This document shows positions 252-22,274 of a stretch of DNA of 64,000 nt, piece by piece (within the stretch, counting starts at the first letter, position 1; every line of letters starts with the position of its first letter). The position numbers and the translations under genes are program-made. Under the pieces are notes generated by a model, which was not told the DNA's origin, did no database searches, and saw only the letters and a list, made by a program, of their open reading frames with translations. The stretch is from Ranitomeya imitator (lineage: Eukaryota). The stretch covers positions 638,538,001 through 638,602,000 of the forward strand of contig NC_091285.1 of the NCBI RefSeq assembly GCF_032444005.1, written 5' to 3'.

Positions 252-298
252 TAACCGGTCATCTGGGTTCATTAACACAAATACTCATTTTTTGTAAC

Positions 299-304
299 AA
301 TAAA
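299..304 (+). terminator. Polyadenylation signal of copy A
   Basis: AATAAA 47 nt after the TAG, at the same position as in copy B (12806-12811). Confidence 0.75.
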
Positions 305-651
305 ATACATTTAAAAATAAGTCAGAAGCAGCTTCATTTCTTCATGCAGAGACTGCAGAAAAATGCTCTCATTTGTGCTTTCACTATAGGGAGCTTAGTT
401 TTATCACACAGTTTAGACCTGGGCAAAGTGCAGCCCTCATACTGTATATAGGGGGCTATGCGGGGCCTCACACTGCATACAGGAGGTTATGTGGGGGGGC
501 GGACACAGATCGCAAAGAGCCCCTGTGCACCAGGGCACGATCCACAATAACTGCTGAGAATGAAGCTCTCGTCATAGAGAATCGCCATTATGAAGGCATT
601 CAAAATTAAAGATTGCCCCATTGTGACCCATTTTGAAATATGGATACTATA

Positions 652-1147
652 AAAGGGAGTTATCCAGGAGTATATCATTTTTTTTTCAAGTGCCTAAGAA
701 GTGACAGGCAGGTAGTTACTACCTACCTGCCTGTTGTGCCCCGCGCCGATCTCTGTCAGCACAGATTGGTCATTGACCACTCCTGCCGGCGATTCTGTGG
801 CTTCTCCGATGTCATGTTGATAGAGCAGCGGCTTCTCTTCCACCCTGCTCTGTTGATGGGGCGTGATTTCCAGACGTCATGCTGATTGACAGCCGGTTCC
901 CTGCTGCCAAGCTGTCAATCAATCAGCATGACGTCAGCAGTCACGTCCTGTCGACGGAGCAGCCCAGATGAAGAAGAGTTGTTCTGGTAACGTGGAGCAG
1001 CTGAATCGCCTACGGGAAGGAGTTGGTGACCACACTGAGCTGGCGCCGGATACAACAGGCAGGCGACTGCTTCTATTAGAAACTCTCTGCGCATTAGTTT
1101 TAAGGCTCATAGTAAAAATATAGAGTAATCATGGACAATCCATCTAA
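652..1147. mobile_element. Degenerate T2/Kolobok-type MITE
   Basis: AGGGAGTTATCCA at the left and TGGACAATCCATCT at the right resemble degraded terminal inverted repeats; internal palindrome catgctgattgacagc...gctgtcaatcaatcagcatg; similar internal motif at ~62310-62640. Confidence 0.4.
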
Positions 1148-2819
1148 AGTACTTGGCTATTGGTGCTATAGGACATGGATGCTTGATACGAACACGCTTC
1201 TTCAGGCAGGTATCTAATAAAGCTACAATATATGGAATTAAGAGGTAGTTCCAGCTCCTTAAAATTCCGCGCCCTGTGGTATCGGTGAGCTGGCAGAGGC
1301 TTTTAGCCTTTTTTTCTTTTGTTTATCTAATAAAGCTACAAAGCTATATAGCAATAAAGTAGATAATCTGATAATTGCTGCACCAATATACCGTAATTAA
1401 CACGACCTTATGTCTGTAATCTCAGTAAATCCCTCATAGTTGCCTGGACTGTATTTTGTGATATCTATTAAATGGATGCTGTGACCAAAATCTACCAGTG
1501 GTGTCCATCATCCATAGACCTCAATATTAAGAACATTTATCCGATTTTTACTATATTCTGCATGATGGCCTAATAGCCAGAAAAATATACCAGCTAGGTG
1601 GAAGCCAAAAGAAGACTTTTGTGTCCTCCGTCTGGCCATGACGCTGTATGGTCATAGCTTATTTATATAGCATTTTCTATACCAATGTCCTTAATTATAT
1701 TAGATGTATAGCGTGAAAGAACCTCAGGCCTAATACTTCTCTCCTACCAAGTGCCATTTATATCACTGTTGGTTTAATATGCCCCTACATGTACCAGGGA
1801 CCGGGTGTGACTGCTATCCCACACTCCCCGCAGCTACGCTCCTGTCATACAACTTTTGATTTAGGTGATACAGGAACAGGGGATGTTTGGATGATCAGGA
1901 AGGAAATTCGAGACCTGTAATGGCAGCCATGTTAATTGTCATTCTTGCCTACTTTTCCAAAAAAAGAGGAGGCAAGTTTTCCAGGTGTCACATTCGGACT
2001 GCGTGAGGTGGAAATATGGCGCAGGGATTGAGGGAACACGCAGCTGAGGGCACATAGTACACAACTGCAGTGTCTGAGGTAGTGTCTGTACAGTGGCTCC
2101 ATTATTGGCCCGAAGGGAGGTTTAACCATCCATGGAGGTGGGGTCGGTCATGAAGGAATTTGCTGAGATAATTTCTCAGGTCAAATGAACTTTACTTTCG
2201 CTGAGGAGGCCCTCAAACATAGACGTTAGATATGAGTGAATGGGTTTGAAGGACCCTGGACCAGTGGCCTCGTCAGTAGTCCATTGCCATCGGACAGATC
2301 CCTTCAATCTGCCTCCTTCCTGCTGGAATCCCCAACACCTTTTCTGATTTGTAGCCTGGTGTGACGTCATCGATGTGGCATGACTCAGCCATGATGTCAC
2401 CTGGGGCCTACTAATCAGAAGAGGCATATGAATAAATTAAATCGGATAAATATTCAATATATACAATATCTGACCATGTCAGATGATTTTGACAGAAAAA
2501 CTCCCATAAACATGAAAAATTAGAACAATTGGAGTCATGAGAACTGTCTTTAAAGTAAATTAAAAAAAATTTATTTATACATAGACAGAGTATGAATGGC
2601 AATAAAATCACTAAAATATTAAGTAGACAAGTATTATGAAGGTGAAATTACATGTGAAGGACACAAGGCAAAAAGAGGAGGGTCTGGAGAGCAACACTAC
2701 AATAAATAGAAGTATATGACCGGTAGGACAAAGTTTTTTAATATACTAAACCATAAATAACTGAGTGCATGGACTTTTAAGAGGCAAACAATGCAGTGTA
2801 TAGTTCAAAATTGATCCTT

Positions 2820-3130
2820 ACCCATACCGGTCATATAGTGTTGCCACCAGACTGCCAGCCCCTACGCGCGTTTCGCGTACGCAGATTTGTGTGTCACTAG
2901 TAATATATATATGCCTAGCACCAGCTGTTTGAAAGGCGGGACATTTGGTATGGCGCATGAGCACGCGATCCTAGCGCCTGAAGTTGCATCACTGCTCGGT
3001 ATCCGATATGACGCGAGGGGTCAGGTAGTCATTCCCCTAGCAACCGTGACCCGGAAGCGTCACACATTAAGGCGCCGGCGGCGATGATCCGGAACGCACG
3101 CGCCACGAGCATGCGCACATGTCCCTTACA
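2820..3130 (-). mobile_element. Penelope-like/retrozyme-type remnant with a partial hammerhead motif
   Basis: Minus strand reads ...CGC GAAAC GCGC GTA GGGG at 2860-2877, the 3' half of the motif seen at 15812-15841 and 54565-54611; boundaries uncertain. Confidence 0.35.
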
Positions 3131-3789
3131 CAGAAGTCTAAGCATGGAGAAAGTAAGTGAAAGAGCACAGTGTCTAATATATTAAATAAGCAGATCCACT
3201 GCAATATCCATTGATGAAGAAAGTGCAAAAAGTGTCATCTAAAGTGCATATGTGGCAATAAAAATTGTATCTCATTAAGCGAAATATGATCATAATGAAA
3301 ATATACCACAATATACAATTTGCAAAACAACAGTTATACATGCACAAAAACTGTGTATATTGATTCAATCATTTAAAGAAAAAATTAATAATAAATTAAA
3401 AATAATAATGGTGAAATACTGTGATACAATAGTAAACAACACCATAATTGAGTGAACAACAGATCTAAAAAAAAAATTAAATGACACTCTCCACATTCCA
3501 TAGACAAAAACATCATACATCATAGATATTAATGAATAGTACACACAACCTAACTCATTAATAGCATTATTCACATAGATACTGGCTTAGTATGATGACA
3601 TTCACATCACACCACTGGTTGATGATTATTGTATCCATTCAATAGTCCAAAATTTATGAAGGTACTTCATATGATGTACAGATGATGCGGCAGCAATGTA
3701 ATAAAAGTCACCAAATAATACAACAGCTGTAAGAAAAACAAAAAATAACAAACATAAATAACCATAAAGCCAGACACACACAACATAGA

Positions 3790-4369
3790 ATAAAGCCAAT
3801 CCAGAGAAATTAACCAAAAAAATGACATGGGGTCCCCCTATATTTTATAGCCAGAAAGGCTATATAAGATGACATTAAGCCTGGTTAATAATAGAGAAGC
3901 ATCAATAAGACGCCTATCCATCACTAATGCTATTGTACTGAAAGTGTAAAAAAATAAAAAATAAAGACACAGCCAGAAAAAAGTATTTCATTATTCTTAA
4001 TTTCACCATACTTACCATATTCGAGCGCCTGCAAAAATAAAAGGAAAAATAATAAACCAACCATATACTTACTTTCCGCCATAGTCCGATTAATAACGAA
4101 TATCCCACGACGATCTCCCCTATAGAACAGTGACATCGGGTCACCCTTAGTGTTCGGACATTTAGTTTTCATCGCCCCAGCTGAATGATTTACAGCTACT
4201 AGCCAGCCCGAGTACATGTGGGGGTTGCCTGGTTGCTATGGAATCCCCACATGTAATCAAGCTGTCTAGTAGCTGTAAATCATGCAGCTGCTGCGAGGAA
4301 AACAAAATCTCCGAGCAGTCACAAATACTCGGAGCCCACCCGAGCAACGAGTACACTCGCTCATCTCTA
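3790..4369. mobile_element. Non-autonomous DNA transposon (TAGAGATGAGCGA-terminus family) truncating the pogo element
   Basis: Right terminus CTCGCTCATCTC-TA at 4356-4369, the same terminus as the MITEs at 10840 and 22275. The pogo frame runs into it (..RLNT|RDERV..). Left end not found. Confidence 0.55.
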
Positions 4370-7187
4370 GTGTTTAGTCTTGCAAGCCTTTGCTTGGTGC
4401 TGGGAGTTAAATGAGGCCTGAACATATCCCACACCAATAGACTCCATTTTTGAATAAGTCCACCTGGTCGCCTGCTCCATACTTTACCAACCCATAGCTT
4501 TACACCTTCCTCATCCATCCAGCCATTTTCATTCACATGTACGAAACAACCAACAGGGAGCTTGGGTCTAGGCATTGTTTTTCTTTTAAAAATAATCATT
4601 GTTCTCAGTTTGGCGCCATCAGCTGTGCATCCTAATACCACTGTAAAACTGGATTTCTCATGCCCCGTTGTTTTAATTATAATTTTTTTTTTCACTTTTT
4701 TGATGGGCAGTTTTATTATCAACCATATCAAAATTCATCGGAATTTCATCCATATTTCCAATACTACTTAACGGACAGTCATGTTTAGTGCGCTGTTGTA
4801 TTACGTATCGATGGAAACTATTCACTTTGCTATAAAGATCTGCGGGTAATTTTTGGGCAATTTTCATTTTTTGCCTCAGTACCATATTATGCCTTGCCAT
4901 GAATCTAGTACACCAGGATACAGTGGCCTTTAAGCTGTTGCTGTGATCTGGGTTAGATTTGGCCCACTGAAGTGCAAACTAACGTATCTGATTTCGTCTC
5001 ACTCCATAACCGCTTTGGCGGTGCTCATTCACCATGTCTGCTACAGGTCTTTCAAGTTCTGGCCAATGTGTGGTGCCTCTTCTTAACGCACACTTACCCC
5101 TTGGCATACTCTTTAATGCTTTTTAATTTCCTTTCCAGTCCCGGACCATCTTTTCTGTTACTCCATATTGTCTTGCAGCAGCGCAGTTATTATGTTCCGT
5201 GGCAAAGTTTACAACTTTAAGTTTGAAACTGGCTTCATATTTCTTTCTTCGTGGTGTAGCCATGATGGGGTTTTGACGGCTGGATATTTGTATACTGTAC
5301 TGCATGTACTGGTGCTATACTGTATGAACAGGTACTGGTGATGTACTGTATGTGGTATCCAATATACACCAACCAGCCAATGTACCTTACCAGCGATTGG
5401 CTGGTTGTTGTATACAAATCCGGCTTGGATTGGTCAGCCCTCCCTGTCTCCAAGAGCGGTAGCACATCCCTCTGGTCCGCCCTTGTACCCATTACTGGTA
5501 CCTCCAGAGAGCGCGCTGTGCCCAGAAAAACATGCCTCTTTCACCCCTCTGGCCCGCCCTTGTACCTATTACTGGTACCTCCAGAGCGCGCGCTGTGCCC
5601 AGAAGAACATGCCTCTTTCACCTATCTGGCCCGCCATTGTACCTATTACTGGTACCTCCAGAGAGCGCGCTGTGCCCAGAAGAACATGCCTATTTCACCC
5701 GTCTGGCCCGCCCTTGTACCTATTACTGGTACCTCCAGAGAGTGCGCTGTGCCCAGAAGAACATGCCTCTTTCACCCGTCTGGCCCGCCCTTGTACCTAT
5801 TACTGGTACCTCCAGAGAGCACGCTGTGCCCAGAAGAACATGCCTCTTTCACCCATCTGGCCCGCCCTTGTACCTATTACTGGTACCTCCAGAGAGCACG
5901 CTGTGCCCAGAAGAACATGCCTATTTCACCCGTCTGGCCCGCCCTTGTACCTATTACTGGTACCTCCAGAGAGCACGCTGTGCCCAGAAGAACATGCCTC
6001 TTTCACCCGTCTGGCCCGCCCTTGTACCTATTACTGGTACCTCCAGAGAGCACGCTGTGCCCAGAAGAACATGCCTATTTCACCCGTCTGGCCCGCCCTT
6101 GTACCTATTACTGGTACCTCCAGAGAGAGCGCTATGCCCAGAAGAACATGCCTCTTTCACCCATCTGGCCCGCCCTTGTACCTATTACTGGTGCCTCCAG
6201 AGAGCGCGCTGTGCCCAGAAGAACATGCCTCTTTCACCTATCTGGCCCGCCCTTGTACCTATTACTGGTACCTCCAGAGAGCACGCTGTGCCCAGAAGAA
6301 CATGCCTCTTTCACCCGTCTGGCCCGCCCTTGTACCTATTACTGGCACCTCCAGAGAGCACGCTGTGCCCAGAAGAACATGCCTATTTCACCCGTCTGGC
6401 CCGCCCTTGTACCTATTACTGGTACCTCCAGAGAGAGCGCTATGCCCAGAAGAACATGCCTCTTTCACCCATCTGGCCCGCCCTTGTACCTATTACTGGT
6501 GCCTCCAGAGAGCGCGCTGTGCCCAGAAGAACATGCCTCTTTCACCCCTCTGGCCCGCCCTTGTACCCATTACTGGTACCTCCAGAGAGCACGCTGTGCC
6601 CAGAAGAACATGCCTCTTTCACCCGTCTGGCCCGCCCTTGTACCTATTACTGGTACCTCCAGAGAGTGCGCTGTGCCCAGAAGAACATGCCTCTTTCACC
6701 CGTCTGGCCCGCCCTTGTACCTATTACTGGTACTTCCAGAGAGCGCGCTGTGCCCAGAAGAACATGCCTCTTTCACCCGTCTGGCCCGCCCTTGCATCTC
6801 TGCCTCTCAGATCTTGCTCCTGAGGACTGCACAGTGACGAGGTGAGGGAGCACAGTGAAACTGCGCAGGCACACGTGCAAGATCTGAGAGGCAGAGAAAG
6901 AGGTAATAAGATACAAGGGCGGGCCAGACGGGTGAAAAAGGCGTGTTTTTCTGGGCACAGAGCCGCTGGCTGTTTTCCATACCCCGTGACACTTGCAGCT
7001 TGCTTCACCTTCCCCGGTGAGGTGCCACCTCACCTCTTCATCGGTTCCGCTCCCCCCACCATATCTGCCGACCGCAGATTGCTCCGCAACCACTCTATAA
7101 GACGACACCCGGCGTATAAGACAACTCCCTGACTTTTGAGAAGATTTTCAGTGGTTAAAAAGTCATCTTGTACACCGGAAAATACGG
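4370..7187 (-). mobile_element. Degenerate pogo/Tigger-type (Tc1/mariner superfamily) transposon with frameshifted transposase
   Basis: Terminus TA-CCGTATTTTCCGGTGTACAAGA (- strand from 7187). ATG at 5263 gives MATPRRKKYEASFKLKVV..AAARQYGVTEKMVRDW (Brinker-type DNA-binding domain). Further fragments GNMDEIPMNFD and TTGHEKSSFTVVLGCTADG..WMDE..LLVWDMF (DDE_1 domain) lie in different frames. Confidence 0.88.
5466..6794. repeat. 77-bp minisatellite, about 17 copies, inside the pogo element
   Basis: Unit ggcccgcccttgtacctattactggtacctccagagagcacgctgtgcccagaagaacatgcctctttcacccgtct; unit starts at 5551 and 5628 give period 77. Confidence 0.97.
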
Positions 7188-7758
7188 TATATATAACGAT
7201 TCTTGCCATAATCTTGTTGATGCTGTTCACAAATACCCAAGTCTACACTATAAAGAATTATTTTTAAGGCTTAAAAAAGTAATTTCATAACAAATGTGCC
7301 TATTTATGAGATATGGAAAACAAGATCTGAATCTCCGCACTATGAAACAGAGTAAAGACAGCGTCTCCCACCATGGTGGACAATAAAGAGATGCCATGTA
7401 ATACTATTGTCCAATGCACTCAGTGGGTTTAGAAAACCCAGATTTGGTAAAAAATGGGGTTGTCCAACTTCTATTTTCCTATCAATCCATTTGCATCTCC
7501 ATAAGGAGCATCGAGGAGCAAATCCTATAACGTGATCCCACTGACACAATGATTTTCACCTAAATTTCCAATGAGCTTAATGTATTTATCATCCAAAGGA
7601 GGAAGCACAATGTTCTTTTGTTCTCATGAAATTGAATGGCACGTAAAATAGGTATTTGCATTATTATGGGGTGGTGTCAGGCGGGTACACACCTATTAAA
7701 ATTATAGGGCGAAGTCCGGTGTCAAAAATTCTAGCGTGTGATTGAAAATGTAGCAAGG

Positions 7759-7766
7759 TATAAAAA
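7759..7766 (+). promoter_or_regulatory. TATA box of the glycine-rich resistin-like gene (copy B)
   Basis: TATAAAAA 31 nt upstream of a CA initiator-like site at ~7790, which is followed by a short exon with a consensus donor. Confidence 0.75.
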
Positions 7767-7789
7767 GGGACTGGATGCAGACTTTGCAC

Positions 7790-7810
7790 ATTTGCACCTT
7801 GCCAAGAAAG
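7790..7810 (+). other. Predicted non-coding exon 1 of copy B (start approximate)
   Basis: Ends AAAG|GTAAGT at 7810/7811; a 170-nt intron ends ccttttgatttgcag at 7980. A non-coding first exon matches mammalian RETN organisation. Confidence 0.65.
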
Positions 7811-7984
7811 GTAAGTAGCTGGGATAATAGGGTGATGCCAGGAAAGGAAGAAAAGATGGTTCAGTAAAGGGGCAGTCAGTAGATATTAGGGTCCTGTAAA
7901 AAGAGTGGCACTGCGGTTATAGGGGATGCCAGGTCAAGGCAGAAAATCTAATATCTCCTGTGTGTCCTTTTGATTTGCAGAAAA

Positions 7985-8033
7985 ATGGCGTTTCTGACGC
8001 TCCTGTTGTGCAGCCTGCTGGTAACCTCGGCAT
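7985..8033 (+). CDS. Glycine-rich resistin-like protein, copy B, coding exon 1 (signal peptide)
   Basis: Strong Kozak aaaaATGG; MAFLTLLLCSLLVTSA hydrophobic leader; phase-1 donor T|GTAAGT at 8033/8034. Confidence 0.88.
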
Positions 8034-8926
8034 GTAAGTATCCGTATCAACTACAAACACAACTCACTGGTAGACAATAGACTAAAGATATCATCTGCAC
8101 CACCTCAACCAGCTAACCAGGTGGTCCTCGGGAACATAGAACTAGTCAAGAATGGGTAGTAAAAGAAAGGCTGGAATTATAGATTAGCAAATTGACTCAG
8201 TGCAAAGCTAATTTGTGTAAAAATTTTAGTAATTCGCGGAACATTTTGAAATTTGAATCGTGCAAATTGCTTAACAAAGCAATTGCCATTTTACACATTA
8301 TCGAAAATTGTGTCACCAAGAGAAGCTTCACATGACCTTAGTGGCGGCTGGACTTCCGAGTAAAGCCTTACAGCTATAACATCACATGGTATAGCACAGC
8401 CAATTAGGAGGTACTGTCATTGCCTGTATAAAAGCTGAGGCAGGAAATGCAGCAGCCAATGTGTGGTGAATCGTGTCAGCTCACAGCTTAGCAATAGAGA
8501 GAGATAGAGAAAGCCATAAAACACAGAATAAACTGTACAGATGTGTGACAGCACAGCAGTGAAGAAAGATTACCATCCGCTAGCCCATATCTATATATGT
8601 TCAGGTCACTTTGTCATTATTAAGGCTGTGTTTGAATTAAATGTGTGTAATACTTCACTTCTACTGTGGCGGTGTTGCACTATATATACATTTGCCAATT
8701 CTAGTATTAGCCCACCACTAAGAAATTGAGGGTTAAAAGTCATTTCCAGGCATTGAGAGATGAGAGACAGCTTGCTCACTAACTCCCATTTATTTTAAGA
8801 GAGATGGGTAGTTTTCCCATAATCTGTTGAAGGAGAAAATCTCACACGAGTCAACAACACTTATGGAGACAAACTGTGCAGCATTTGTGGAACTCACCAA
8901 ATAATCTGTAACTTGTGAATTTGCAG

Positions 8927-9352
8927 ATGCACAGTTTGGGTGGCCAAGCGGTGGAGGTTACGGTGGTGGAAGCTCTGGAGGAGGCGGAGGTTACGGTGGT
9001 GGAAGCTCTGGAGGAGGCGGAGGGTACGGTGGTGGAAGCTCTGGAGGAGGCGGAGGTTACGGTGGTGGTGGAAGCACTGGAGGAGGCGGAGGTTACGGTG
9101 GTGGAAGCTCTGGAGGAGGCGGAGGTTACGGTGGTGGAAGCTCTGGAGGAAGTGGAGGTTACGGTGGTGGTGGAAGCTCTGGAGGAAGCGGAGGCAATAA
9201 TGGAGGAAACTCTGGAGGAGGTGGAGGCTATGGTGGAGGAAACTCTGGAGGAAGTGGAAGCAACTCAGGAGGCACCACTACTGCAAAATGTGCATGCTCT
9301 TTGACTTGCATAGATGTAAGAACAAGCGGGAACACCGCCAAGTGCCAATCTG
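8927..9352 (+). CDS. Glycine-rich resistin-like protein, copy B, coding exon 2 (Gly/Ser/Tyr repeats plus start of resistin head)
   Basis: Acceptor gaatttgcag at 8917-8926. Stop-free phase-1 frame YAQFGWPS(GGYGGGSSGGG)n...GGTTTAKCACSLTCIDVRTSGNTAKCQS-G; phase-1 donor G|GTAAGA at 9352/9353. Confidence 0.92.
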
Positions 9353-10839
9353 GTAAGATAACTGTTGCCATTGTCTTGTACACGTCTTCTAAATGGCTTA
9401 TCATGTCATTATGTAGCTTGGAGGTAACATTCAATATACAGGGGCTCATATCAGGGGGCTCATATTATCCTGTAACTCCACCAATGCCATTCTATAGAAA
9501 CCATAGAAAAAAATGACATCAAATAATAGCGGGAGCTCAATGTATATGGATTTATGGTTATGTAGAAAGATGACTTCTTCACAGTGGGCACCATCAAGCA
9601 TGGAGCCCTTCATTTTAAACATTTTGCGTTTGCCCCTGGTTTAGTAAATTTATCTGGCTATCTAGTCTTATGTAGCAGGCAGTCCTCCATTAGGTTTACC
9701 TTTCACTAGGTCTGATATATCTATAGCTTTAAAGGGGTTAGGATTGGCCTTCAATATTGGAATAATGGGGGTCCGCCGATCAGCTGATTGAAGAAAACAT
9801 GACTCTCCAGCAAGTATGGCGTCCATTAATTATTGACCAGTCACAGCGCCATACTTTTGGCTGTGGCTATGCCTGGTACTGCAGCACAGTCCCATTCACT
9901 TGTATAGGAATGAGCTGCAATACTGCGCGCAGTGTGTGCGGTGGCCCCTTCCATCAGTCAGCCGGTGCGAGTGCCAAAAGTCAGACCCCTGAACCGATGC
10001 AGTAATATATTGCCGGTCTAGGAAAGGCCAACTATTTTGTGGCCCGTGACACTTTTTATAGTCCTTATTTCTTAGGAGGAGCTGCTATTTGTTCCTTAGA
10101 AATAACATAAACCAAAAAACTTTCTTCTTTGTTTTTGGAGGGGGGGATTCAGTCTTAATTTAGGATATAAAAACGCACACAAATCTTTACAAGACTGAAT
10201 TGTATGAAAAAGACCTAAAGCACTAAGCAGTGCCATTAATTACGTCTTGGGTAACATGTATAGGTGGAGCAATCAGCAATGCTAATTAGCTGATGGTAAT
10301 TATAAATTCTATATAACGCAATGATTACGCAACGAGGCTGGTTTGTTACAATGTATCAGTGTGTAGAGAGTGTTTCAGCATATTCTCCCAATTGTGCAGA
10401 TCAGGAGTCGGCAGGACCAGGCTTTTATACACTCTGCTGGTTAAAGGGAAAGTCTGGTCTGGCTAATAAAGTACACCCAGTAATATGGATTATGAAATGA
10501 AGTCGTTCAAAACAAAATCTCTCTGTAACCTCGTCCTGACGTCTGCAGTCCATATGTGGAGAACAGCAATCCTGGCTGTCTAACCCCTTAGATGCTACGG
10601 TCAATAGTGACTTTGACATCTAGGCGGTACGGGAGATGTTTCCTGCTGTATTCTCATTGCCTTTCTCCAATGCATGATCTTGGGGTGCCATTGGTTTGTT
10701 ATGACAGCCGTGGGCTCAATGATGGCCCCCGGGTCTGCCATTATTTCACATGTATGTATGATGATGATGACGCAATACTCAATAATATGACCATCAGCAT
10801 TACAGTGAAAAGTGCAGGAAATAAAGAGCTATTGCAATA

Positions 10840-11152
10840 AGTGATGACGAACGTACTCGGATAAGGTGTTATCTCAGCATGCTCGTGTCCTAATTGAGTA
10901 TTTTCGGCGCGCGCTCCAAAAATATATTCGAGTTCCCGCGGCTGCATGTCTCGTAGCTATACGACTGCCACAACACATGCAGGGATTACCTAACAAACAT
11001 TGTATCCCTGCATGTGTTGTGGCTGTCAAACATCCGTGAGACATGCAGCCGCGAGGACTCAAACTCATATTATTCCAGCACGCCGAAGATACTCATTTAG
11101 GACACGAGCATGCTGAGATAACACCTTATCCCAGCATGTTTGCTCATCACTA
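10840..11152. mobile_element. Palindromic MITE in intron 3 of the resistin-like gene
   Basis: Long inverted arms GTGATGA..GGATAAGGTGTTATCTCAGCATGCTCGTGTCCTAA / TTAGGACACGAGCATGCTGAGATAACACCTTATCC..TCATCAC-TA. Confidence 0.85.
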
Positions 11153-11429
11153 ATTGTAATGTATGATATAAGTGATCAAAAAATTCTATTGTTAATCCTC
11201 CAAAGGGGCTGGAAAAAAATATATACAAAAATCTTTTTTTCTCCCTTATGCAAATAAAATGAAAAAATCTAAATGGCACCATAATTAGTAGTATCATCAT
11301 GTCTGTGATGAAATCACAGGATACAGATGGATTGCCTGGGCCCCCATGGTTGTTATCTTAGTTCTCCTGTGAAACCCAGCCATCATTTTTCTTACGTACT
11401 ATACTATACTACACTATACTGTGCCCAAA

Positions 11430-12365
11430 AACATGTTTTAAAAATATAAAAAAGAAAAAGTATAAAAGTACGATTTCCCCCTTTCCCAGATAATTTTTTT
11501 TTTTTAAAAAAGCATAGTCAGTCTTGCCGTTTTTGGAAAACTCCGATCTATAAAGTATAACAGTAATAAAGGGGCTGTCCATTCCTCAGACAACCTCTTC
11601 TCAACTACGATATCCCCCCATGTAAAATAAAAGCCCACACCAGTGCCGGAACCGTACCCACAAAGTCAGCGTCGAGTCGCTTGGGGCCCGTGTGACACGA
11701 CGTGTGATGGGGCTTGCTGGAGGGGAGTACAGGCATGATTTTCTTTTTTTTTTTTTTACATGGGGCAATATAGTAATTGGGAAAGTGTTGTTTGATTAGT
11801 GGACAACCCTAGAGGACAGAGAATAATAGAAAACACCAGAATTGCTCTTTCTCAGTTGCTGCACCTAGCCCTAAAAGATCCAATTAAAAGCTATCAAACT
11901 ATCACATACACCCAAATTGGTACCAATTAAAACGTCAGCTCGCCACCCCAAACCCTAGAGGACAGAGAATAATAGAAAACACTAGAATTGCTGTTTCTCA
12001 GTTGCTGCACCTAGCCCTAAAAGATCCAATTAAAAGCTATCAAACTAATCACATATACCCAAATTGGTACAAATTAAAACGTCAGCTCGCCACCCAAAAA
12101 AAAAATCCATACATAACCATACAAACCTAGGAATCATGTCACCTGGTCATTTTTTCAACACAATGAACACGTTAAAAAAAATAAAATAAAAATATAAAAT
12201 AGTACAGTAAATGGTAAAATAAATGGATCAAAACTATAACTCGTTCCACAAAAAAACGAGCCCTCATACGACAATGTCGACAGACGAATAAAAAAAAAGT
12301 TAAGACTCTTGGAATTAGGGGGGAATGAAATAATTAAAAAAAAAAAAACCCCAGTCATGAAGGGG
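11430..12365. mobile_element. Right part of a piggyBac-like non-autonomous element containing a ~146-bp tandem duplication (11805-12096)
   Basis: Terminus GTCATGAAGGGG-TTAA at 12354-12369 is the reverse complement of the TTAA-CCCCTTCATGAC terminus at 57968. Duplicated unit starts aaccctagagg at 11805 and 11951. Left end uncertain. Confidence 0.6.
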
Positions 12366-12630
12366 TTAAAAGAGGTATACTAGAAAGTTACAACATATAC
12401 ATAGAATATGTCACAATTGTCTAATAGATGTGGGTCTAACCTCTAAGACTTATAGGAATCTCTAGAATAGGGCCCCACGTCTCAGCGCCACAAATGCAGA
12501 GGTGGATGCACCTGCCTGTCCCTCTCCATTAACTTCTATGCGACTTCTGAAAATATCCAAGCAAGTATGGAGGAGCGTGGACCTTGCAGTGTATTCTGCA
12601 GGATGACATTTCCTTTTTTTACACTTTCAG

Positions 12631-12758
12631 GATATACTCCCGTCTCCTGTTCCTGTGGAATGGGCTGTGGATCCTACAACTTCAAGACCGCCAACTCATG
12701 TGTCTGTGAATGCCTTAACACAGACTGGACGAGTGCCCGCTGCTGCAAGAGCGCCTAG
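12631..12758 (+). CDS. Glycine-rich resistin-like protein, copy B, terminal coding exon
   Basis: Acceptor tttacactttcag; completes C-X11-C-X8-C-X-C-X3-C-X10-C-X-C-X-C-X9-CC exactly when joined to 9352. Total CDS 49+426+128=603 nt = 200 aa + stop. Confidence 0.93.
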
Positions 12759-12805
12759 TAACCGGTCATCTGGGTTCATTAACACAAATACTCATTTTTT
12801 GTAAC

Positions 12806-12811
12806 AATAAA
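12806..12811 (+). terminator. Polyadenylation signal of copy B
   Basis: AATAAA 47 nt after the stop. Confidence 0.75.
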
Positions 12812-13190
12812 ACACATTTAAAAAGGAGTCCGAATCGGCTTAATTTCCATATCCAGAGACTGCAGAAAAATGCTCTCATTTGTGCTTTCTCATTAGGGAG
12901 CTTACAGTTTTATCACACAGTTCAGACCTGGGCAAAGTTCAGCCCTCATACTGTATATAGGGGGCTATGTGGGGGCTCATACGGAAGCTAATTGGGGGCT
13001 CATAAGGTATATAGGGGGCTATGTAAGGGGTCATACTGGTTATCTTGGGCAGATATTGTATATAGGTGGCTATGTGGGGGTTCATACTGTATATGGGGCT
13101 ATGTAGGGGCTCACACTGCTTATAGTAGGCTAAGTGGGTGCTCATATGGTATATAGTGGTCTATGTGGTTGATCATACGGTATATAGGGG

Positions 13191-16088
13191 CTACGTCATC
13201 ATCTCGCGAGACCGCAATGCACTCTTCAGACCGGAGCGCGCGAGAAGCGTCGGTAACCGCTTCGATCCGGGGGCCAACAGAGGGCGAGTATATGACTATT
13301 TTTTTATTTTAATTTTTTTTTTTTTTCTAAACAGGGATATGGTGCCCACATTGCTATAGACTGCGTGGGCTGTGCAATATATTACGTGGGCTGGGCAATA
13401 TACTACGTGGGCTGGGCAATATACAACATGGGCTACGCAATATACTACGTGGGCTGCGCAATATACTGCGTGGGCTGCGCAATATACTACGTGGGCTGCG
13501 CAATATACTGCGTGGGCTGGGCAATATACATGGGCTACGCAATATACTACGTGGGCTGTGCAATATACAACGTGGGCTGCGCAATATACTATGTGGTTGG
13601 GCAATGTACTACGTGGGCTGGGCAATATAGTACGTGGGCTGCGCAATATACAATGTGAGCTGGGCAATATACAACGTTGGCTGCGCAATATAATACGTGG
13701 GCTACGCAATATACAATGTGGGCTGCGCAATATATAACGTGGGATGCGCAATATACAACGTGGGCTGCACAATATACAACGTGGGCTGCGCAATATACTA
13801 TGTGGTTGGGCAATATACTACGTGGGCTGCGCAATATACTACGTGGGCTGGGCAATATAGTACGTGGGCTGCGCAATATACAATGTGAGCTGGGCAATAT
13901 ACGTGGGCTGCGCAATATAATACGTGGTTGGGCAATATACTACGTGGGCTATGTGGTATCTAATACTGTATATAGGGGCGCACACTGTATATAGGGAGCT
14001 GTGTGGAGGCTCATACTGTATACAGGGGGACTCTGTGGGATCACACTGTATATAGGGGAAGTGTCACCATAATAATAAAAAAAAAATAGTTATATACTCA
14101 CCCTCCGGTGCCCCCCCCCCCCCCCGGATCAGGAACCGGCCTTTCCGGCTCCTCGCGATGCCCCGGTGACCGCTCCATGCATTGCAGTCTCGCGAGATGA
14201 TGACGTACGGTCTCGCCAGACCACTACGTCATCATCTCGCGAGACCGCAATGCACTCTTCAGACCGGAGCGCGCGAGAAGCGTCGGTAACCGCTTCGATC
14301 CGGGGGCCAACAGAGGGTGAGTATATGATTATTTTTTATTTTAATTCTTTTTTCTTTTTTTTTTTTAACAGGGATATGGTGCCCACATTGCTATAGACTG
14401 CGTGGGCTGTGCAATATATTACGTGGGCTGGGCAATATACTACGTGGGCTGGGCAATATACTACGTGGGCTGCGCAATATACTGCGTGGGCTGCGCAATA
14501 TACTACGTGGGCTGGGCAATATACAACGTGGGCTACGCAATATACTACGTGGGCTGTGCAATATACAACGTGGGCTGCGCAATATACTATGTGGTTGGGC
14601 AATGTACTACGTGGGCTGCGCAATATACTACGTGGGCTGGGCAATATAGTACGTGGGCTGCGCAATATACAATGTGAGCTGGGCAATATACAACGTTGGC
14701 TGCGCAATATAATACGTGGTTGGGCAATATACTAAGTGGGCTGCGCAATATACTACGTGGGCTACGCAATATACAACGTGGGCTGCGCAATATACAACGT
14801 GGGCTGCGCAATATACAACGTGGGATGCGCAATATACAACGTGGGCTGCGCAATATAATACGTGGTTGGGCAATATACTAAGTGGGCTGCGCAATATACT
14901 ACGTGGGCTACGCAATATACAATGTGGGCTGCGCAATATACAACGTGGGCTGCGCAATATACAACGTGGGATGCGCAATATACAACGTGGGCTGCGCAAT
15001 ATACTATGTGGTTGGGCAATATACTACGTGGGCTGGGCAATATAGTACGTGGGCTGCGCAATATACAATGTGAGCTGGGCAATATACAACGTGGGCTGTG
15101 CAATATACTACGTGGGCTACGCAATATACAATGTGGGCTGCGCAATGTACTACGTAGGCTGCGCAATGTACTACGTGGGCTGCGCAATGTACTGCGTGGG
15201 CTGCGCAATGTACTGCGTGGGCTGCGCAATGTACTGCGTGGGCTGCGCAATGTACTGCGTGGGCTGCGCAATGTACTGCGTGGGCTGCGCAATGTACTGC
15301 GTGGGCTGCGCAATGTACTGCGTGTAAAGAACAAGGCAAACACTGAAGGCTGTTATAAACAAGTGCAATCATAATAATAGATGTAATCATATAGTATAAT
15401 CAGCCAATACATGGAAAGTGTAGGACACACCACTGCTAATAAGCTAAACCTCTAAAAAATAGTGCAATAGTCCAAATACATAGAAAAAGTTTATTAGATA
15501 AATACAAAAATGAACAAACAAAGTCAGCAAGGTCAGCAAGGTAGGGAGCGTGAGACAACAAACCTCATGGAGCTAAAGAGCAAGGAAGTGTTCCCCAAAC
15601 AAAAATCAATAAATAGGACCTTAGATGGTGCATATAAAATATAGTGGGCTCACATATAAACCTAACATACCGTCTGATAATTGTATCAAGATCATATTAT
15701 ACATAGTACAAAGTAGCAAACCACAGATGTGTGTAGATACAAATAATGCACATATAAACATAAGAGCATACCACTATAGAATGGGGAAACACACCAGCTC
15801 CTGCCCATCCCGACGCGCGTTTCAGTAAAGTCCTTCCTCAGCGTGCGTGCCATGTATTGAGGCAGGTGGAATATATAGCTGCCAGATCGCCAAGTACAGC
15901 CAACAGGCTCCCACATCACCGCAAAACGGCCACACATGGCACCATCGGAAATACACGGGCCCATGTATATACTGCGTGGGCTGTGCAATGTACTGCGTGG
16001 GCTGTGGAATATACTACGTGGGCTGTGCTATACACTACGCATACATATTCTAGAATACCCGATGCGTTAGAATCGGGCTACCATCTAG
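13191..16088 (+). mobile_element. Composite non-autonomous Helitron sequence with an expanded ~20-21-bp internal minisatellite
   Basis: Ends with hairpin cccgat-gcgttaga-atcggg followed by CTAG at 16085-16088. Unit gtgggctgcgcaatatactac is repeated over 13360-13950 and 14400-15325; the block at 13192 is repeated at 14225. Confidence 0.8.
15326..15960 (-). mobile_element. Penelope-like/retrozyme-type insertion interrupting the Helitron minisatellite
   Basis: AT-rich ~635-bp block flanked on both sides by the minisatellite; - strand carries CTGAGGA..GAAAC GCGC GTC at 15841-15812. Confidence 0.5.
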
Positions 16089-16596
16089 TCTACTATATAA
16101 TTGTCTAAGGGTCACTTCCGTCTGTCTGTCTGTCACGGATATTCATTGGTTGCGGCCTCTGTCTGTCATGGAAATCCAAGTCGCTGATTGGTCGTGCCAA
16201 AACGCCCATGACCAATCAGCGACGGGCACAGTCCGGCAGCAAAATGGCTGCTCTTTCCTCCCCGCAGTCAGTGCACGCTCCATACTCCCCTCCAGTCAGC
16301 GCTCACACAGGCTGTGCAATATACTACATGGCTCTACAATATACTACGTGGCTATGTTATATACTACGTGGCTGACCAATATACTACATACCTGTGCAAT
16401 ACACTACGTGGCTGTTATATACTACGTGGCTGTGGTATATACTACGTACGCTGTGTTACATACTACGTAGCTCTGTTATATACTACGTCGGTTGTGTTAT
16501 AAACTACGTCACTGTGCAATATAGTACGTAGCCTGTGCTATATACTACCTACATATTCTAGAATACCCGATACGTTAGAATCGGGCCACCATCTAG
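16089..16596 (+). mobile_element. Complete short non-autonomous Helitron, head-to-tail with the previous one
   Basis: Starts TCTACTATATAATTGTCTAAGGGTCAC directly after the previous CTAG; ends with hairpin + CTAG|T at 16593-16597. Confidence 0.88.
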
Positions 16597-17599
16597 TATT
16601 GTATATATGTGGCTGTGTAGGGAGCTGTGAAGGCTATCCTGTTATTTATGGGGGATTATGGTGGCTATCATCAGGCTGTGGGGGATCATTATAGGGAAGC
16701 ACAGGCGTCATAGAGGAAAAATTAAAATCCATAAAGACATCTTCAGAGAAGGGAGAAAAGCTGACACTTTAACTTCCCTTAAAATAGGTCTTCACATTGA
16801 ATATATGGGATTAATTAAACTTAGAAACAGAGGGACTAATGAAAACAAAGGAAATGAGAGCGAGAGCGAATACTTTCATCTCCACTGAAGTAGGAGCCTC
16901 CTGCGATGACCGGATAATTACAGCAGCGAGATTTGATCCGAAAAAGACCCAAAGTCTGAGATCTGTATATTCAAGAGACAGAGGGATGCTTAGCCCAATG
17001 TAAACAGGGATTAAAATGGGATGATCGGGACAAGGCCCCTTCTTTCTTTACTCTGTATAGTGTTTCTTTTTCTGTAATGATGGGCAATATTTAATTCTGG
17101 CATATTACACCATTTTGTATGCCTGACAAAGACCTATGTCAAGTGGAAATATCGCATCTATCTTTTTCACCTGATTTTGGATTCTGCCTATTTAATATTT
17201 TTAGCATTGTTTTGATGAATCTGAGGGACACGTAGGAGAGTTTGCACTAATAAATCCTGACACAAGCGTGACTCACTATGTGGCCGGGTGTGTCCCTTCC
17301 TCTTGGCAGGATGGGCTCTTTGTTAGAGCATGCAAGAAAAACAAATCTGAACTGTTCTGACAAAAGCCTTAAGAAACGACTTCTCTCATCTACCAGGAGC
17401 TTTCGTACAGATTACCTCATGCTTCAGGTTTCAACACCAGGAACAACACGCAGATCCGCAGAGTCTCATTGATCCTTCCACACAACAGATCTGAGATGAG
17501 AAAAACAATAAAAAAAAAAACTGATGCCCCTAGGATGCAAAACACCTGTGAAAAAGAAATACTCCACTTCTATCAGTAGCATTGGGATATGGCTATAGT

Positions 17600-20290
17600 C
17601 TTAGGTTATGTTTACACTGCGTAATTTTCCTGTAAAAAAAAACATCAGTTTTTCAGTCAGAAGATGCTTCAGAGGTCGCTTCTCTTTTCCTGACGTTTTC
17701 TCAATATTTTGTAATACAAAGCATTTTTTTTTATTTCACGTTATTTTATTCTTCCACCAGCATTTTTGTAGGACGCTTATTTCAGCTTTTTTTTTTTTTT
17801 TTTTAGGGGGGGCATCTTTATTAGTGTTTTTCAGATGCATTTGGAAATCTATTAAGCAATGGTTAAACTGCTAGCATTTTTTTTTTGCAAAAAAGAAAAC
17901 ACCTTAAAAACTGCTCAAAAAGACACCCAGGCATCTTCTATGGTTTTTTTTAGACTTTTTACTGACTTGTCTTCTAAAGTATTGAGCGTCATTCCAGTGG
18001 AAAACGCCTGAAAAAGTGACTTCTTTTAAACGCTTGACTGTTTTGAAAGCCTGATGAATTTTTTTTTTAGCGTTTTTTTTGGAGCAGCATCAATCACCGC
18101 ATTTAGAAAGCAGGTAGCGGGATGGGGCTCCCTCTCCCCTTGATTGGCGCCCTCGGAACATCATTGTGGGGCCCAATTATTGCCATGATGACCAGAGGAC
18201 AAAAATTAATGTCATCTTGTCCCACAAAAAAGAAGCCGCCATACAGCTCCATCAGCGGAAAAAATAGTTATAGCTCTAGGAATAAATCAATGCAAAAATA
18301 ATTATTTTTTCTATAAAATAGTTTTTATTGTGTAAAAGTGACAAAACCTAAAAAAAATTACAAAAAACTATAGAACTGGGGTATCGCTGTAATTGTACTG
18401 ACCGGAAGAATAGAGCTGCTCTATCCATTTTGCCACATGCGGAACGGTATAACCCTCCCCCCAAAAAATAAAAATCAATTCCTGAATTGCTGTTTTTTTG
18501 TTCATTCTGCCTCCCAAAAATTGGAATAGAAAGTGATCAACCAACTTTATGCCCCTGAAAGTGGTACCAATAAAACCATAAACTCATCCCGCAAAAAGCA
18601 AACACTGACAGGATTTTGTCGGCCAAAATATGGAAAAATTATAGCTCTGAAAATATGGCATTTTTTAGTGTTTAACAGCAGGCAGACACAAAAAAATATA
18701 TATATATAAATCTGGTATCGCTGTAAATCGCACCGACCCGAAGATCACTTATACTGCATAAGGAATGGCGTATAAAATAAATAAAACCAATTCTTTACCT
18801 GCTGTTGATTTTTTCTTTCTGCCTCCCAAAGATTGTAGTAAGGTTTGGGGCACATTTATCCTGCACTCTATGAAGAGCGCTTGCACCGTGGTTTCCATGT
18901 AAATCTCTGAACTACGTGCATCAGATGGAACCCCCGGTGGAACAGTCCCTATACTCAGGCAGATGGAGACACTGTGGATGCTGTCTGGCCTATGATCTGG
19001 CGGTATCCGTCTTTTTAGGCGTACATGAAAGTGCGGTCCTACACAGTTTTGTGCACTTCTAAAAAGAACACTGTTGAACAGAGGCCATACAGAGTCCAGA
19101 GTAACTCTGCTGCCTCATATAGTGAATGGATCCCTCAGGGGTTTGATCTTAATCACTTCACTAGGAGATTTAGATGGAATCTCCAAAGTAAGTGCTCAGC
19201 GTAGAGTGCCGGAAAAATGTGATCCGCTCTTCTAGTACTTAGGGGCTCTGTATATGGAGTCTGCGAACTAAACTAGGAAAATCTGCACTCCAGGAGGAAA
19301 ATAACAGTCCATCCCTCCAGAGTCTCTCTGTATGGCTAAGCAGTACTGTACAGCTACATATGAAGTATTTCTACATTCAGCAGAAATTGGGGGACAAAAT
19401 TTGGTGCAATTTTTACCCATTTCCCTTTGTCAAAATGTAAAATCTGGCGAAAACAAAATTTGTGTGGCAAAAATGTAATTATTTTTCCTTCACTGTCCAA
19501 TGGAATATAATTATGTGACCCACCTGTGGTTTTAATATGATCACTGCACCCCTAGATGAATTAATTGAGGTGTAGTTTGTAAAATAGGGTCACTCATGGG
19601 GGTTCTGCTGTTCTGGCACCTCAGGGGCTCTCCCAGTGGGTCATGGCACCTGCAAACCAGAAGAGTAAAATCGCACTATAATATGGCGCTTCTACCCTTC
19701 GCACTGTGCCTCAGAAGTATTTACTGATTACATGTAGTTTATTGGTGCAGTCAGGAGAAATTTTTACACCAAACACAACAAACTGAGGTCCGTTTTTACC
19801 TACTAACCCTTAGAAAAATTAAAAACTCGTGATGCATCCCTCACGCTGCTTCCGCTCCCAAGGATGCTTTGCGACAATGACCCGTGATGATGTAGCGGTC
19901 TTGCGAGACCACTACGTCATGTGGGGTCATTGCCGCAAGGCATTATTGGGAATGGGAGAATCGCGAGGAGCGGGAAGGCTGCGGGGGACGCCGGAAGGTG
20001 AGAATATCACGATTTTTTATTATTTTTAACATTAGAACTTTTTACTATTGATGCTGCATAGTACAAAGTTGGTCACACTTATCAAACACTATGTTTGACA
20101 AGTGTGACCAACCCGTCAATCGGTTTTCCAAGCGATGCTACAGACCGCTTGGAAAACGCTAACATTCTGCAAGATAATTACGCTTGCAAAACGCTAGTGT
20201 TTAGCGGGAATACGCATGCCAATTTCGCATGCGCTTTACCCGCTGCACAGTTGCGGAATTCCGGACGTGTGCACATAGCCTTAAAGAGTT
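17600..20290. mobile_element. Patchwork of degenerate DNA-transposon fragments (Harbinger-type MITEs, piggyBac-like internal sequence, Helitron fragment)
   Basis: Degraded GGCTATGTTCACAC-like termini (17603; 20265-20282) and motifs shared with other repeats in the window; individual boundaries not resolvable by eye. Confidence 0.45.
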
Positions 20291-22274
20291 TTATGATACC
20301 CTTTGCTGGATATTTTACATTTTTTTTGGTGGATACTTGGCGCCCTACAGGGCTTTCCGGGCATAAGAGATCCTTTTATCCATGTGTAAGCCATTTGTGA
20401 TCCAAGTCAGGCTTTCACAATTCAGTGCAAAGTCCCCGGTAGCCCAGCTCCACCTTCTCTTCAAATCCTGATCCAACTGTTCTGCTCCCCCCTCCCCCCC
20501 CCCCGGCCAGTGACTTTGCAGTAATGACAAACTATAGTTCTAATGATGACTCATGCAGGGAAAACAAAATTTCCAGATTCTACATAGAATTTAGAAGGAT
20601 TCAGCTGGTCAGTTTTTAATCACGTGATGTTCATTGCCATAATGGAAAAATAATTAACTGAGAATAAAAGGCAAAATGGGCAATTGTAAGTACACAGTGT
20701 TATATAACAGGACTACAAAATATTGCAAGGATAAAAACCGTGATGGGAGTGCTTCTTGAAAGTAGCACTCCCCAATGTTATTTTCTTTTTAAATTTATCC
20801 TCTCACTGGTCCCCTAATATAAAGTATATATTTATACATATATACACACACATACAGTACATACAAACACCGGTAATTCAGCTAGTAGTACTATATATAA
20901 TTTTCCTTTCTGGAGACTTATCTAATACTTCTCTAGGGGATTGGACAGGTTTATGTTCTCTGAAGTGGGTCACCATCTCAGTGGATAGCAATCTGTACGA
21001 TGCAATTGCATGGATCGTACCGCTAAAGGTTTCCACAGAACAGAAGCTTCTATCAAAGATAATGATGATGACTGCACAGCCCCTGTCGGTTATAATGCAG
21101 AACACAGCTGAACCTACCTTACTATAAACATATAATTAGTTTTTTTAGGAGAATAAAAATGGGAGGATAATCAGGGTCACCCCTCAGATAAGATGACGTG
21201 GACTCTAGATGCCCATGTGATGTTGTGCTGATCCAACATGGGGCTGACAGCGGAGCATAAAGGAATAACATGCAGGATGGGAGCTAGGAGTCAAGATGGA
21301 GGATGATGGGGTTTTCCCATGGAGCTTTGCCTGTAAGACACCAAAGCAGCTGAGTCTCTTCAATGAGTGGAAGCTTCAATAGAAAAAAAAAAAAACATAA
21401 CAGACCGTGCTATTTCTATATGGCTTTATTTAGGAAACTCAACAAGTGCCTTCATTATATATATGCAAATGTACAACAGCAATCAGTTTTCCTCAGTGCA
21501 AATATTAAAACGTCCATACATCCCCAAGACAGTCGGATGCGAGTTTCAAGTCTTTCCTGTTGCCATGGCGATTTAAAGGATATCTCCCCCACCCCCCAAT
21601 ATATACACTTTATTCTGAAGAAATTAGTTTACATTTTTACTTTTATGTTTTTTCTATTCATGAATCAACTGGAAACAGTCATTTTCCTGAGATAATAAAA
21701 AAAAATTATTACTCAAATGGTAATACGCGGGCAGGACAATATCAATCCTCCTGTGATACAGTTAACGATTGTCTTAATTATTCCCAGAGTTCAGACAATT
21801 TGATAAGAGGTATCCACATGGGCCTTGGGGGGGGAGAATATGTATTTAAAGGGCCAGTCCACTTATATGGAAGTCACTCGCTAGTGCAAAATATTTTATA
21901 TATATTTTTTTATATATATATAAATAACTCCTCCCCGTCCATGTCGTCACCATTGGCCACACGGATCTCGCCATGTGGGAGCCCAGCTACGATCAGACTG
22001 GAAATAGTAAAGAAAGGACATACAGAATACCATATTTTTACATTTTAAAGCCAAGTGAGTGCGTGCAAGTCCTAAACGTGCCGAGAAATAACACTAGTGG
22101 GTAGATCGTGTGAAATGGCCACTTGCCATGTGGAAACCAACAGGAAAAAAAAAAAAAGAGGTATCAGAGAGACATGATGATGGGCAGGGAAAACAAATCC
22201 AACCACCATGTGGTAGCCGGAACTAGTCACACAGTGCCCCAGTATGTATGGAGAGGCCACCCAGACGTTGGCTA

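Follow-up and report, generated by a model that had tools for sequence, protein, structure and literature searches.

A 64,000-nucleotide stretch of the Ranitomeya imitator genome (contig NC_091285.1, positions 638,538,001 to 638,602,000 of the forward strand; hereafter the window) was found to contain a gene for a probably secreted resistin-like protein, in which a ten-cysteine resistin head is preceded by a long glycine-rich tract and the helical stalk of mammalian members is missing. It is very probably a working gene with this product, and the protein belongs to a neobatrachian-specific subfamily of resistin-like proteins rather than being a one-off. Direct splicing of four exons gave an uninterrupted frame of 200 codons, with the ATG at 7985, the stop codon at 12756-12758, GT donors directly after 7810, 8033 and 9352, and AG acceptors directly before 7981, 8927 and 12631. 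The original prediction, made from the sequence of the window alone, had proposed four GT-AG exons and a stop-free frame of 200 residues, which splicing reproduced exactly.

By direct reading, the protein starts with Met, a hydrophobic core of 12 residues and A-Y-A ahead of Gln19, which bears out the signal-like start proposed before. A putative signal peptide is common to all members of the clade described below in the alignment, and the AlphaFold2 model of the relative from Anomaloglossus baeobatrachus (P0001) has a helix at residues 2-16, in the signal region. From the cleavage site to a C-x-C motif, the tract comprises 119 residues of mainly Gly, Ser and Tyr (63% Gly). A recount of residues 25-132 (108 residues) yielded 74 Gly, 20 Ser, 8 Tyr and 5 Asn, the same Gly and Tyr numbers as first reported. 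The tract is largely built from a 33-bp repeat that encodes an 11-residue unit, G-G-Y-G-G-G-S-S-G-G-G; it holds eight (G/S)-Y-(G/S) motifs and one Pro, the latter in the Q-F-G-W-P tip outside the repeats. Among the 118 tract residues that precede Lys137 (19-136), K, R, H, D and E were all absent, so that the tract lacks the net positive charge of cationic Gly-rich antimicrobial peptides. Peptides of antimicrobial defence are typically cationic, and the tract differs from them in this respect.

With regard to the head, a regular expression showed that Cys144-Cys197 match the spacing C-X11-C-X8-C-X-C-X3-C-X10-C-X-C-X-C-X9-CC without deviation, in full agreement with the original prediction. Two extra cysteines that it had not mentioned, 138 and 140, form the C-x-C motif just ahead of the head. 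Pfam scans were run on the exon 3 and exon 4 translations separately. The exon 4 translation alone (41 residues) matched Resistin (PF06954) with 48.8 bits (E=1.1e-12; gathering cut-off 25), which excludes chance and supports the proposed membership in the resistin/RELM family, and no Pfam match was returned for the exon 3 translations.

Gene structure and transcripts

Coordinates of all features are listed in Table 1. Upstream of the coding exons, window positions 7579-7825 were 72% identical over 254 bp to positions 9075-9322 of the orthologous locus of Engystomops pustulosus (L001), including the promoter, the TATA box and the exon 1 donor. This similarity ended just past the exon 1 donor and picked up again at the exon 2 acceptor; the donor and the next 15 bases were identical in the two species, and exon 2 was 78% identical to its Engystomops counterpart. 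Counterparts of exons 2 to 4 (signal, Gly/C-x-C and last exon) are likewise present in the Engystomops locus, where the intron within the head sits at the same position as in the window gene. The position of the TATA box places the start of transcription near 7790, and exon 1 probably consists of about 20 nucleotides of 5' untranslated region (UTR). Of the originally proposed span of 7759-12811, the left end marks the TATA box rather than the transcript start, and the last six positions, 12806-12811, hold the AATAAA signal, which precedes the transcript end. The latter would be expected some 15-25 nucleotides past AATAAA; identity to the upstream paralog falls sharply past 12813.

Exon 3 or part of it is contained in 18 public runs from seven studies, four of which (X1, X5, X13 and X17, from four studies) were mapped on 7650-11470; the assembled contigs give neither strand nor transcript start. 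Word depth over exon 3 was approximately 1,100 in X17, 770-1,130 in X5, 3,800-22,000 in X1 and 58,000-280,000 in X13, compared with 5-55 in the flanking introns, that is, a ratio of ~80-5000 in the four runs. The contrast could also be observed in the non-repetitive end of exon 3, where an X17 contig (9121-9353, depth 1097) showed zero differences from the window, as did a second X17 contig at 9088-9150. In X13, the bin 7906-8033, which contains exon 2, reached a depth of 23888. Transcript abundance is thus extreme in some of the RNA data sets.

The three joints named in the original prediction fared differently. The joint 8033/8927 (GT..AG) was present in X13 contigs. The joint 9352/12631 was supported by X1, X5 and X17 contigs that continue past 9352 into the first 17-28 letters of exon 4, although such loose ends cannot tell the window gene from its near-identical paralog. 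No contig over exon 1 or the joint 7810/7981 was found in the mapped runs, as expected for an exon of about 20 nucleotides, and the sole support for this joint comes from the promoter, TATA box and donor conserved with Engystomops. Among contigs of the four mapped runs there was no joint that bypassed the Gly tract. A few in-frame 3-bp length variants occurred among the runs at 9043 and 9266 in the repeat. In X21-X23, which carry the same species label as X17, almost no sampled words of the gene were found in an index that cannot prove absence; this near-absence may reflect tissue-restricted expression.

Some additional signals were noted in intron 2. A second TATA-like element, TATAAAAG, lies at ~8428, contigs of X1 and X17 switch to unrelated sequence at 8422, and an X1 contig whose depth is ~1% of that of the exon extends without splicing from 8518 into exon 3. 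These signals (8418-8930) may represent the edge of a repeat, pre-mRNA or a minor start within the gene.

Frog relatives and loss of the helical stalk

Relatives were searched for by an exhaustive HMMER pass with exon 4 and two word-indexed searches, which returned the resistin family. The layout of the window protein was found in at least seven other frog species, all of them automatic predictions: A. baeobatrachus (164 residues, uncharacterized), Bufo bufo (139) and B. gargarizans (134), both named "trihydrophobin-like", Rhinoderma darwinii (160, resistin isoform X1), E. pustulosus (P0054; 114, hypothetical protein, with a mis-modelled N-terminus), Eleutherodactylus coqui (95, resistin-like) and Lithobates pipiens (272, resistin). 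Features common to these Gly-type members are the putative signal peptide, the Q-x-x-W tip of the mature chain, a tract rich in G, S, N and Y, and a C-x-C-x3-C motif. K or R stands directly before C-x-C in six of the eight members; Rhinoderma has A-A-R, and Lithobates has Glu at this position. The distance from the cleavage site to C-x-C varies from 14 residues in Eleutherodactylus through 53-58 in Bufo, 82 in Anomaloglossus and 119 in the window protein to 143 in Lithobates. Repeat units also differ between species: the composition is kept, the sequence and length are not. The original prediction had described a Gly-Tyr tract. A Gly-rich low-complexity tract is indeed present where mammalian members have none, but Tyr is not a conserved feature of it (none in Eleutherodactylus, two in Rhinoderma), which weakens the idea of cross-linking through Tyr.

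A maximum-likelihood tree was built from 29 heads and 56 columns (8 Gly-type heads and 21 others). Most of its inner forks were not resolved; the eight Gly-type heads formed one side of a branch with support of 100/99, and the Xenopus, reptile, mammal, fish and jawless-fish heads lay on the other side. The clade is marked by C-G-S-Y-N/S-F in place of C-G-S-W-D-I/V and by loss of the His of C-H-C-Q-C. Comparison of the window head with that of Engystomops gave a ratio of non-synonymous to synonymous substitution rates (dN/dS) of 0.19 (dN 0.19, dS 0.99), and the head is under purifying selection. It should be noted that a search with the Lithobates head matched only the Lithobates head itself, and that the ranoid branch is represented by one automatic prediction. 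In addition, the annotated Engystomops protein begins inside the Gly exon, apparently in a shifted frame. In this locus a good signal-peptide exon (9575-9623) lies 380 bp upstream of the Gly exon (10001-10222), but when the 5' part of exon 3 was rebuilt, no acceptor yielded an in-frame Q-x-x-W start; this misfit may be due to an indel in the assembled repeat or to a real difference.

The original prediction knew of no resistin-family protein with this architecture. We likewise found no description of a helix-less, Gly-tract resistin in the literature on resistin in frogs and amphibian skin; however, the architecture is present in the annotations of the seven other species. Two further arrangements of resistin-like heads fell outside the tetrapod pattern: P0034, on a 623-bp metagenome contig from ENA, has a head behind a Q/N/T-rich, probably coiled-coil segment, and P0031 (347 residues) combines three head-like repeats with an Ala-rich tail behind them.

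Structure predictions for the Anomaloglossus protein are in line with this family assignment. In the AlphaFold2 model, the head was all-beta with a predicted local distance difference test (pLDDT) score of 83-95, the tract scored below 50, and no helix was predicted in the segment that links the signal peptide to the head. Foldseek matched the model to 1rgx, 1rh7 and 1rfx at E values of 2e-7 to 5e-7. The modelled head superposed on 1rgx and 1rh7 (mouse resistin and RELM-beta) with a root-mean-square deviation of 0.8-0.9 Å over 59 columns at 44-46% identity, and as predicted it is the resistin disulfide-rich beta-sandwich. When three copies of residues 96-164 were modelled together, the interaction prediction score from aligned errors (ipSAE) was 0.89 and that of the best control 0.00, contacts agreed in at least 96% and partner pLDDT was 88; the ipSAE mark used is reached by 21 of 30 proteins solved as one-chain pairs and by none of 23 solved as single chains, a calibration made on two copies and not on three. 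Residues 101-105, including C-x-C, sit in the predicted trimer interface.

In the canonical layout, an N-terminal Cys is followed by a helix of ~28 residues and then by the first Cys of the head. The alignment showed that this helix segment is absent from all eight Gly-type proteins, where C-x-C-x3-C runs directly into the head and the Gly tract lies N-terminal to the motif. The original prediction had assumed that the helix was replaced by the Gly tract. Instead, the helix is simply deleted, and the tract appears to be an expansion of the short mature N-terminus before C-x-C. In Pogona resistin, C-x-C-x3-C spacing occurs at the mature N-terminus, ahead of the helix, and the frog form could therefore derive from helix loss together with growth of the tract between the cleavage site and the cysteines. 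The alignment thus suggests that the helix was lost and that the Gly tract expanded in the short pre-cysteine segment. A collagen or polyglycine-II triple helix was also considered for the tract and rejected, because the 11-residue period does not fit; uninterrupted Pro-rich G-X-Y triplets are absent (33-bp/11-residue unit, a single Pro, and a tract predicted to be disordered in the Anomaloglossus protein).

Possible functions

The original prediction had suggested either an antimicrobial or an adhesive/matrix role, both of which are hypotheses. We tentatively favor a role as a host-defence effector at the skin or gut mucosal barrier, to which we would give an even chance or slightly less. In the proposed mechanism, signal cleavage would leave an N-terminal Gln, probably cyclised, in the conserved Q-x-x-W tip. 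The heads would trimerise on their own, without a stalk, and the C-x-C pairs at the three-fold axis would staple the chains by interchain disulfides in place of the coiled coil. The head might act like that of mammalian RELM-beta, in which the C-terminal region on its own binds acidic lipids and makes bacterial membranes permeable. The tract could serve as a disordered spacer, or as an arm that associates with itself, and so keep the head within mucus or gland secretion or concentrate it there. Both murine and human RELM-beta permeabilise bacterial membranes (review PMC13647132), and a stalk-less head could thus still be an effector. The most specific form of this proposal, namely a helix-less, self-trimerising head with a C-x-C disulfide ring and three uncharged Gly/Ser/Tyr arms of rapidly adjustable length with pyroglutamyl Q-x-x-W tips, which condenses or is anchored in skin or gut mucus, thereby concentrates a membrane-permeabilising head at the surface and is an independent vertebrate counterpart of type II crustins, is unlikely to hold in every part. 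If true, it could bear on how frogs resist skin pathogens, chytrid fungi among them.

Several points weigh against a defence effector of this kind. The structure and complex predictions were made on the Anomaloglossus protein, which is 75% identical to the window protein over 56 head columns. The trimer prediction may be a recall of the solved resistin trimers, and shows likeness rather than proof. Disulfide stapling through C-x-C is a step that we infer. The head is only mildly basic (6 K+R versus 3 D+E, pI 8.3) and the tract has no charge at all. Furthermore, the clade-wide changes in the head (W-D to Y-N/S and loss of His) may mean that lipid binding is not retained. Finally, the label of the runs as RNA is a guess, and it is the depth contrast together with the spliced contigs that speaks for their being RNA.

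Other explanations should also be weighed. The protein could build or stiffen an extracellular material such as skin mucus, gland plug, egg jelly or an adhesive, whose tract self-assembles, coacervates or is cross-linked through dityrosine or disulfides and whose head serves as a trimerising disulfide knot. A sticker-spacer pattern is a mark of self-associating low-complexity domains, and the eight (G/S)-Y-(G/S) motifs in a chargeless tract would fit it, as would the two spare cysteines per chain, the multivalent molecule that the predicted trimer would form, and a transcript depth as extreme as that of bulk secretory products. We nevertheless consider such a material unlikely: the Tyr count falls to zero or two in some relatives, the tract of Eleutherodactylus is down to 14 residues with the head intact, selection is seen on the head and not on the tract sequence, and the repeat period misfits a collagen or polyglycine-II register. 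A signalling role, in which the head would bind a receptor of the host or a conspecific as a hormone, cytokine or pheromone-like ligand, as has been proposed for mammalian resistin and RELM-alpha, and the tract would tune its diffusion or presentation, appears quite improbable. Cytokine and hormone roles have been reported for mammalian members (PMC9869618, PMC13647132). In Plectrohyla, a 'resistin-like' transcript is listed among the products secreted by the lip gland of males, which serves courtship, although no architecture is given for it (PMC8613984). Tandem duplication and fast divergence would also fit reproductive proteins, but a transcript depth that exceeds the intron level thousands of times is more what one expects of a bulk effector than of a hormone, and no receptor is known.

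Frog skin peptides are commonly cut from precursors, and the protein might likewise be a two-product precursor, cut at the basic residue before C-x-C into a Gly-rich peptide with a pyroglutamyl Q-x-x-W tip and a stalk-less head, each of which would have an activity of its own. The K or R found at this position in most members and the K-R of Eleutherodactylus, a classical convertase site, are compatible with such processing. However, a dibasic site is lacking in the other seven members (in six of them the one basic residue has no other basic residue upstream, and in Lithobates there is none), and the Eleutherodactylus peptide would comprise just ~12 residues of G and N, which makes this explanation distinctly improbable. 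That the gene does not work at all, being a chance frame, a pseudogene or an assembly artefact of a Gly-coding minisatellite beside a resistin exon, could be suspected from the lack of a contig over exon 1 and from the difficulty of assembling such repeats. Given the abundant spliced contigs in four studies, the zero differences in X17, the intact frame, the promoter and exon structure conserved with Engystomops, the low dN/dS of the head and the same layout in seven species, we consider its probability close to negligible. An intracellular role in cornification was rejected because of the putative signal peptide; a preprint on tadpole cornification (10.64898/2026.09.30.755311) does not mention resistin.

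With respect to novelty, the domain and the family are known, and public annotations already contain the architecture, with names that are uninformative or wrong; what is described here is a lineage-specific subfamily rather than a new system. Research on resistin-like proteins has dealt almost exclusively with mammals, in which the coiled-coil stalk is taken to define the family and to underlie its oligomers. In the frog clade the head has been kept under selection and the stalk dropped, which suggests that the head can assemble and act alone and makes the clade a natural test of which part of a RELM protein kills microbes. The abundant, tandemly duplicated and mislabelled transcript is a plausible missing component of amphibian skin or gut mucosal defence, which matters given chytrid-driven declines. 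The clade merits its own name, and at least one annotated model (Engystomops) has a wrong N-terminus. Our results offer a lead for work on both amphibian mucosal immunity and RELM structure-function relationships.

Genomic surroundings and comparison with known systems

The left edge of the window carries part of an upstream tandem paralog (Table 1). Window positions 1-470 were 94.7% identical to 12508-12979; the last coding exon showed 3 synonymous and 0 non-synonymous differences, and the 43 residues aligned by tblastn were identical. The tandem array extends past the left edge of the window. The 77-bp satellite between the two copies has long open frames in three phases and no Pfam content.

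Table 1. Features of the resistin-like gene, followed by other features of the window
Feature	Positions	Strand	Basis or remark
Conserved proximal promoter block	7579-7759	+	Similarity to the orthologous Engystomops locus
TATA box TATAAAAA	7760-7767	+	Direct reading; Engystomops counterpart TATAAGAA
Exon 1, non-coding, start approximate	7788-7810	+	Donor AAG/GTAAGT after 7810
Exon 2: 4 nucleotides of 5' UTR, ATG at 7985, signal peptide to first base of codon 17	7981-8033	+	
Exon 3: Gly tract and C-x-C	8927-9352	+	Direct reading, translation, contig depth
Coding tandem repeat, 33 bp, 8.9 copies, 88% matches	8953-9252	+	Tandem Repeats Finder
Exon 4: remaining resistin head, coding sequence to 12755, stop 12756-12758, 3' UTR, AATAAA 12806-12811; end approximate	12631-12830	+	
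Upstream tandem paralog: end of last intron, last exon (coding sequence 124-251, AATAAA 299), downstream flank	1-470	+	
DDE_1 transposase open reading frame	4162-4731	-	E=7e-10; DNA-transposon remnant between the copies
77-bp satellite, 17.2 copies, 95% matches	5471-6794		Located between the gene and its paralog
BAG4 last coding exon, BAG domain	24926-25165	-	75% identical to the human sequence; converges on the resistin-like gene
Long interspersed nuclear element (LINE), 874-residue open reading frame with endonuclease and reverse-transcriptase domains	28319-30943	-	
Second LINE, reverse transcriptase split over two frames	37129-39061	-	
GC-rich block, several open frames	54865-56285	Both	
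LSM1 exons 1 and 2	57134-57187, 61315-61404	+	Head-to-head with expected BAG4 start

On the other side, the gene adjoins BAG4 and LSM1. The matches to the queries for these two genes were 73-83% identical and were taken as self-validating. Both LINEs presumably lie within BAG4 introns, that is, between its last coding exon and its expected start. The GC-rich block is probably a CpG island together with the Gly/Pro-rich first exon of BAG4; a marginal Ribosomal_S5_C match in it (22.9 bits) looks spurious. Gly-rich tblastn matches on the minus strand at 55.0-55.6 kb were considered as a further family member and rejected, since they fall in this block near the expected 5' end of BAG4 and look like chance low-complexity similarity.

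Among known systems, the Gly tract itself brings to mind acanthoscurrin, the shepherins, loricrin and keratin tails, which have repeats in the style of G-G-Y and G-G-G-S. These are stand-alone peptides or intracellular cornification proteins, whereas the frog tract carries no charge, belongs to a protein that is probably secreted and is joined to a folded domain, and no sequence relationship was found between the tract and these Gly-rich antimicrobial or Gly-loop proteins. Resistin heads on collagen stalks occur in a lamprey (Petromyzon marinus, P0017), a hagfish (Myxine glutinosa, P0035) and a frog (Gastrophryne carolinensis, P0040); these proteins likewise carry the head on a Gly-rich repeat stalk that is not a coiled coil. 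Their stalks are, however, Pro-rich G-X-Y repeats, a known trimerising element, unlike the window tract with its 11-residue period and single Pro. P0035 and P0014, which has a collagen stalk and head like P0017, group with the canonical heads in the tree, which was built without P0040. Judged from sequence, the collagen stalks are another stalk swap within the family, in jawless fishes and a microhylid frog. In annotations the three proteins bear the automatic names 'collagen alpha-2(I)-like' or 'collectin-43-like'.

Xenopus tropicalis 'resistin-like beta' (P0019) and the proteins of Pogona (P0056) and Erpetoichthys (P0012) share the domain; in contrast to the Gly-type members, they keep the ~28-residue helix, are 110-112 residues long and lie on the other side of the 100/99 branch. 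Mammalian resistin and RELM-alpha, -beta and -gamma (1RFX, 1RGX, 1RH7) resemble the window protein in the signal peptide, the ten-cysteine head of identical spacing that matches PF06954, the spare N-terminal cysteine(s) outside the head and perhaps the head-to-head trimer, which is predicted for the Anomaloglossus head. The frog form differs from them in that it has no N-terminal helix, and hence no coiled coil, and carries its 119-residue tract ahead of the head; the helix is a feature of the solved mammalian members and not of the Pfam domain. The frog protein also has two spare cysteines in a C-x-C directly next to the head, where mammalian members have one Cys ahead of the helix, W-D changed to Y-N and the His lost within the head, and a gene that adjoins BAG4-LSM1, which mammalian resistin genes are not known to do.

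The layout as a whole matches that of the type II crustins of decapods, which are antimicrobial and have a signal peptide, a length-variable Gly-rich region (~50% Gly) and a disulfide-rich domain. In crustins, the variable-length Gly-rich region lies after the signal peptide and ahead of the Cys-rich signature, varies in content as well as length, and is judged by the authors to be of little relevance for antimicrobial activity (PMC10363340). Crustins have also been auto-named 'trihydrophobin-like' (PMC10363340), as have the two Bufo members. The Cys-rich part of crustins, however, is a WAP four-disulfide-core unrelated to the resistin head, and for the translated exons 3 and 4 Resistin was the only Pfam match, with no WAP domain. 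Any likeness between the two groups is convergent and concerns the layout only.

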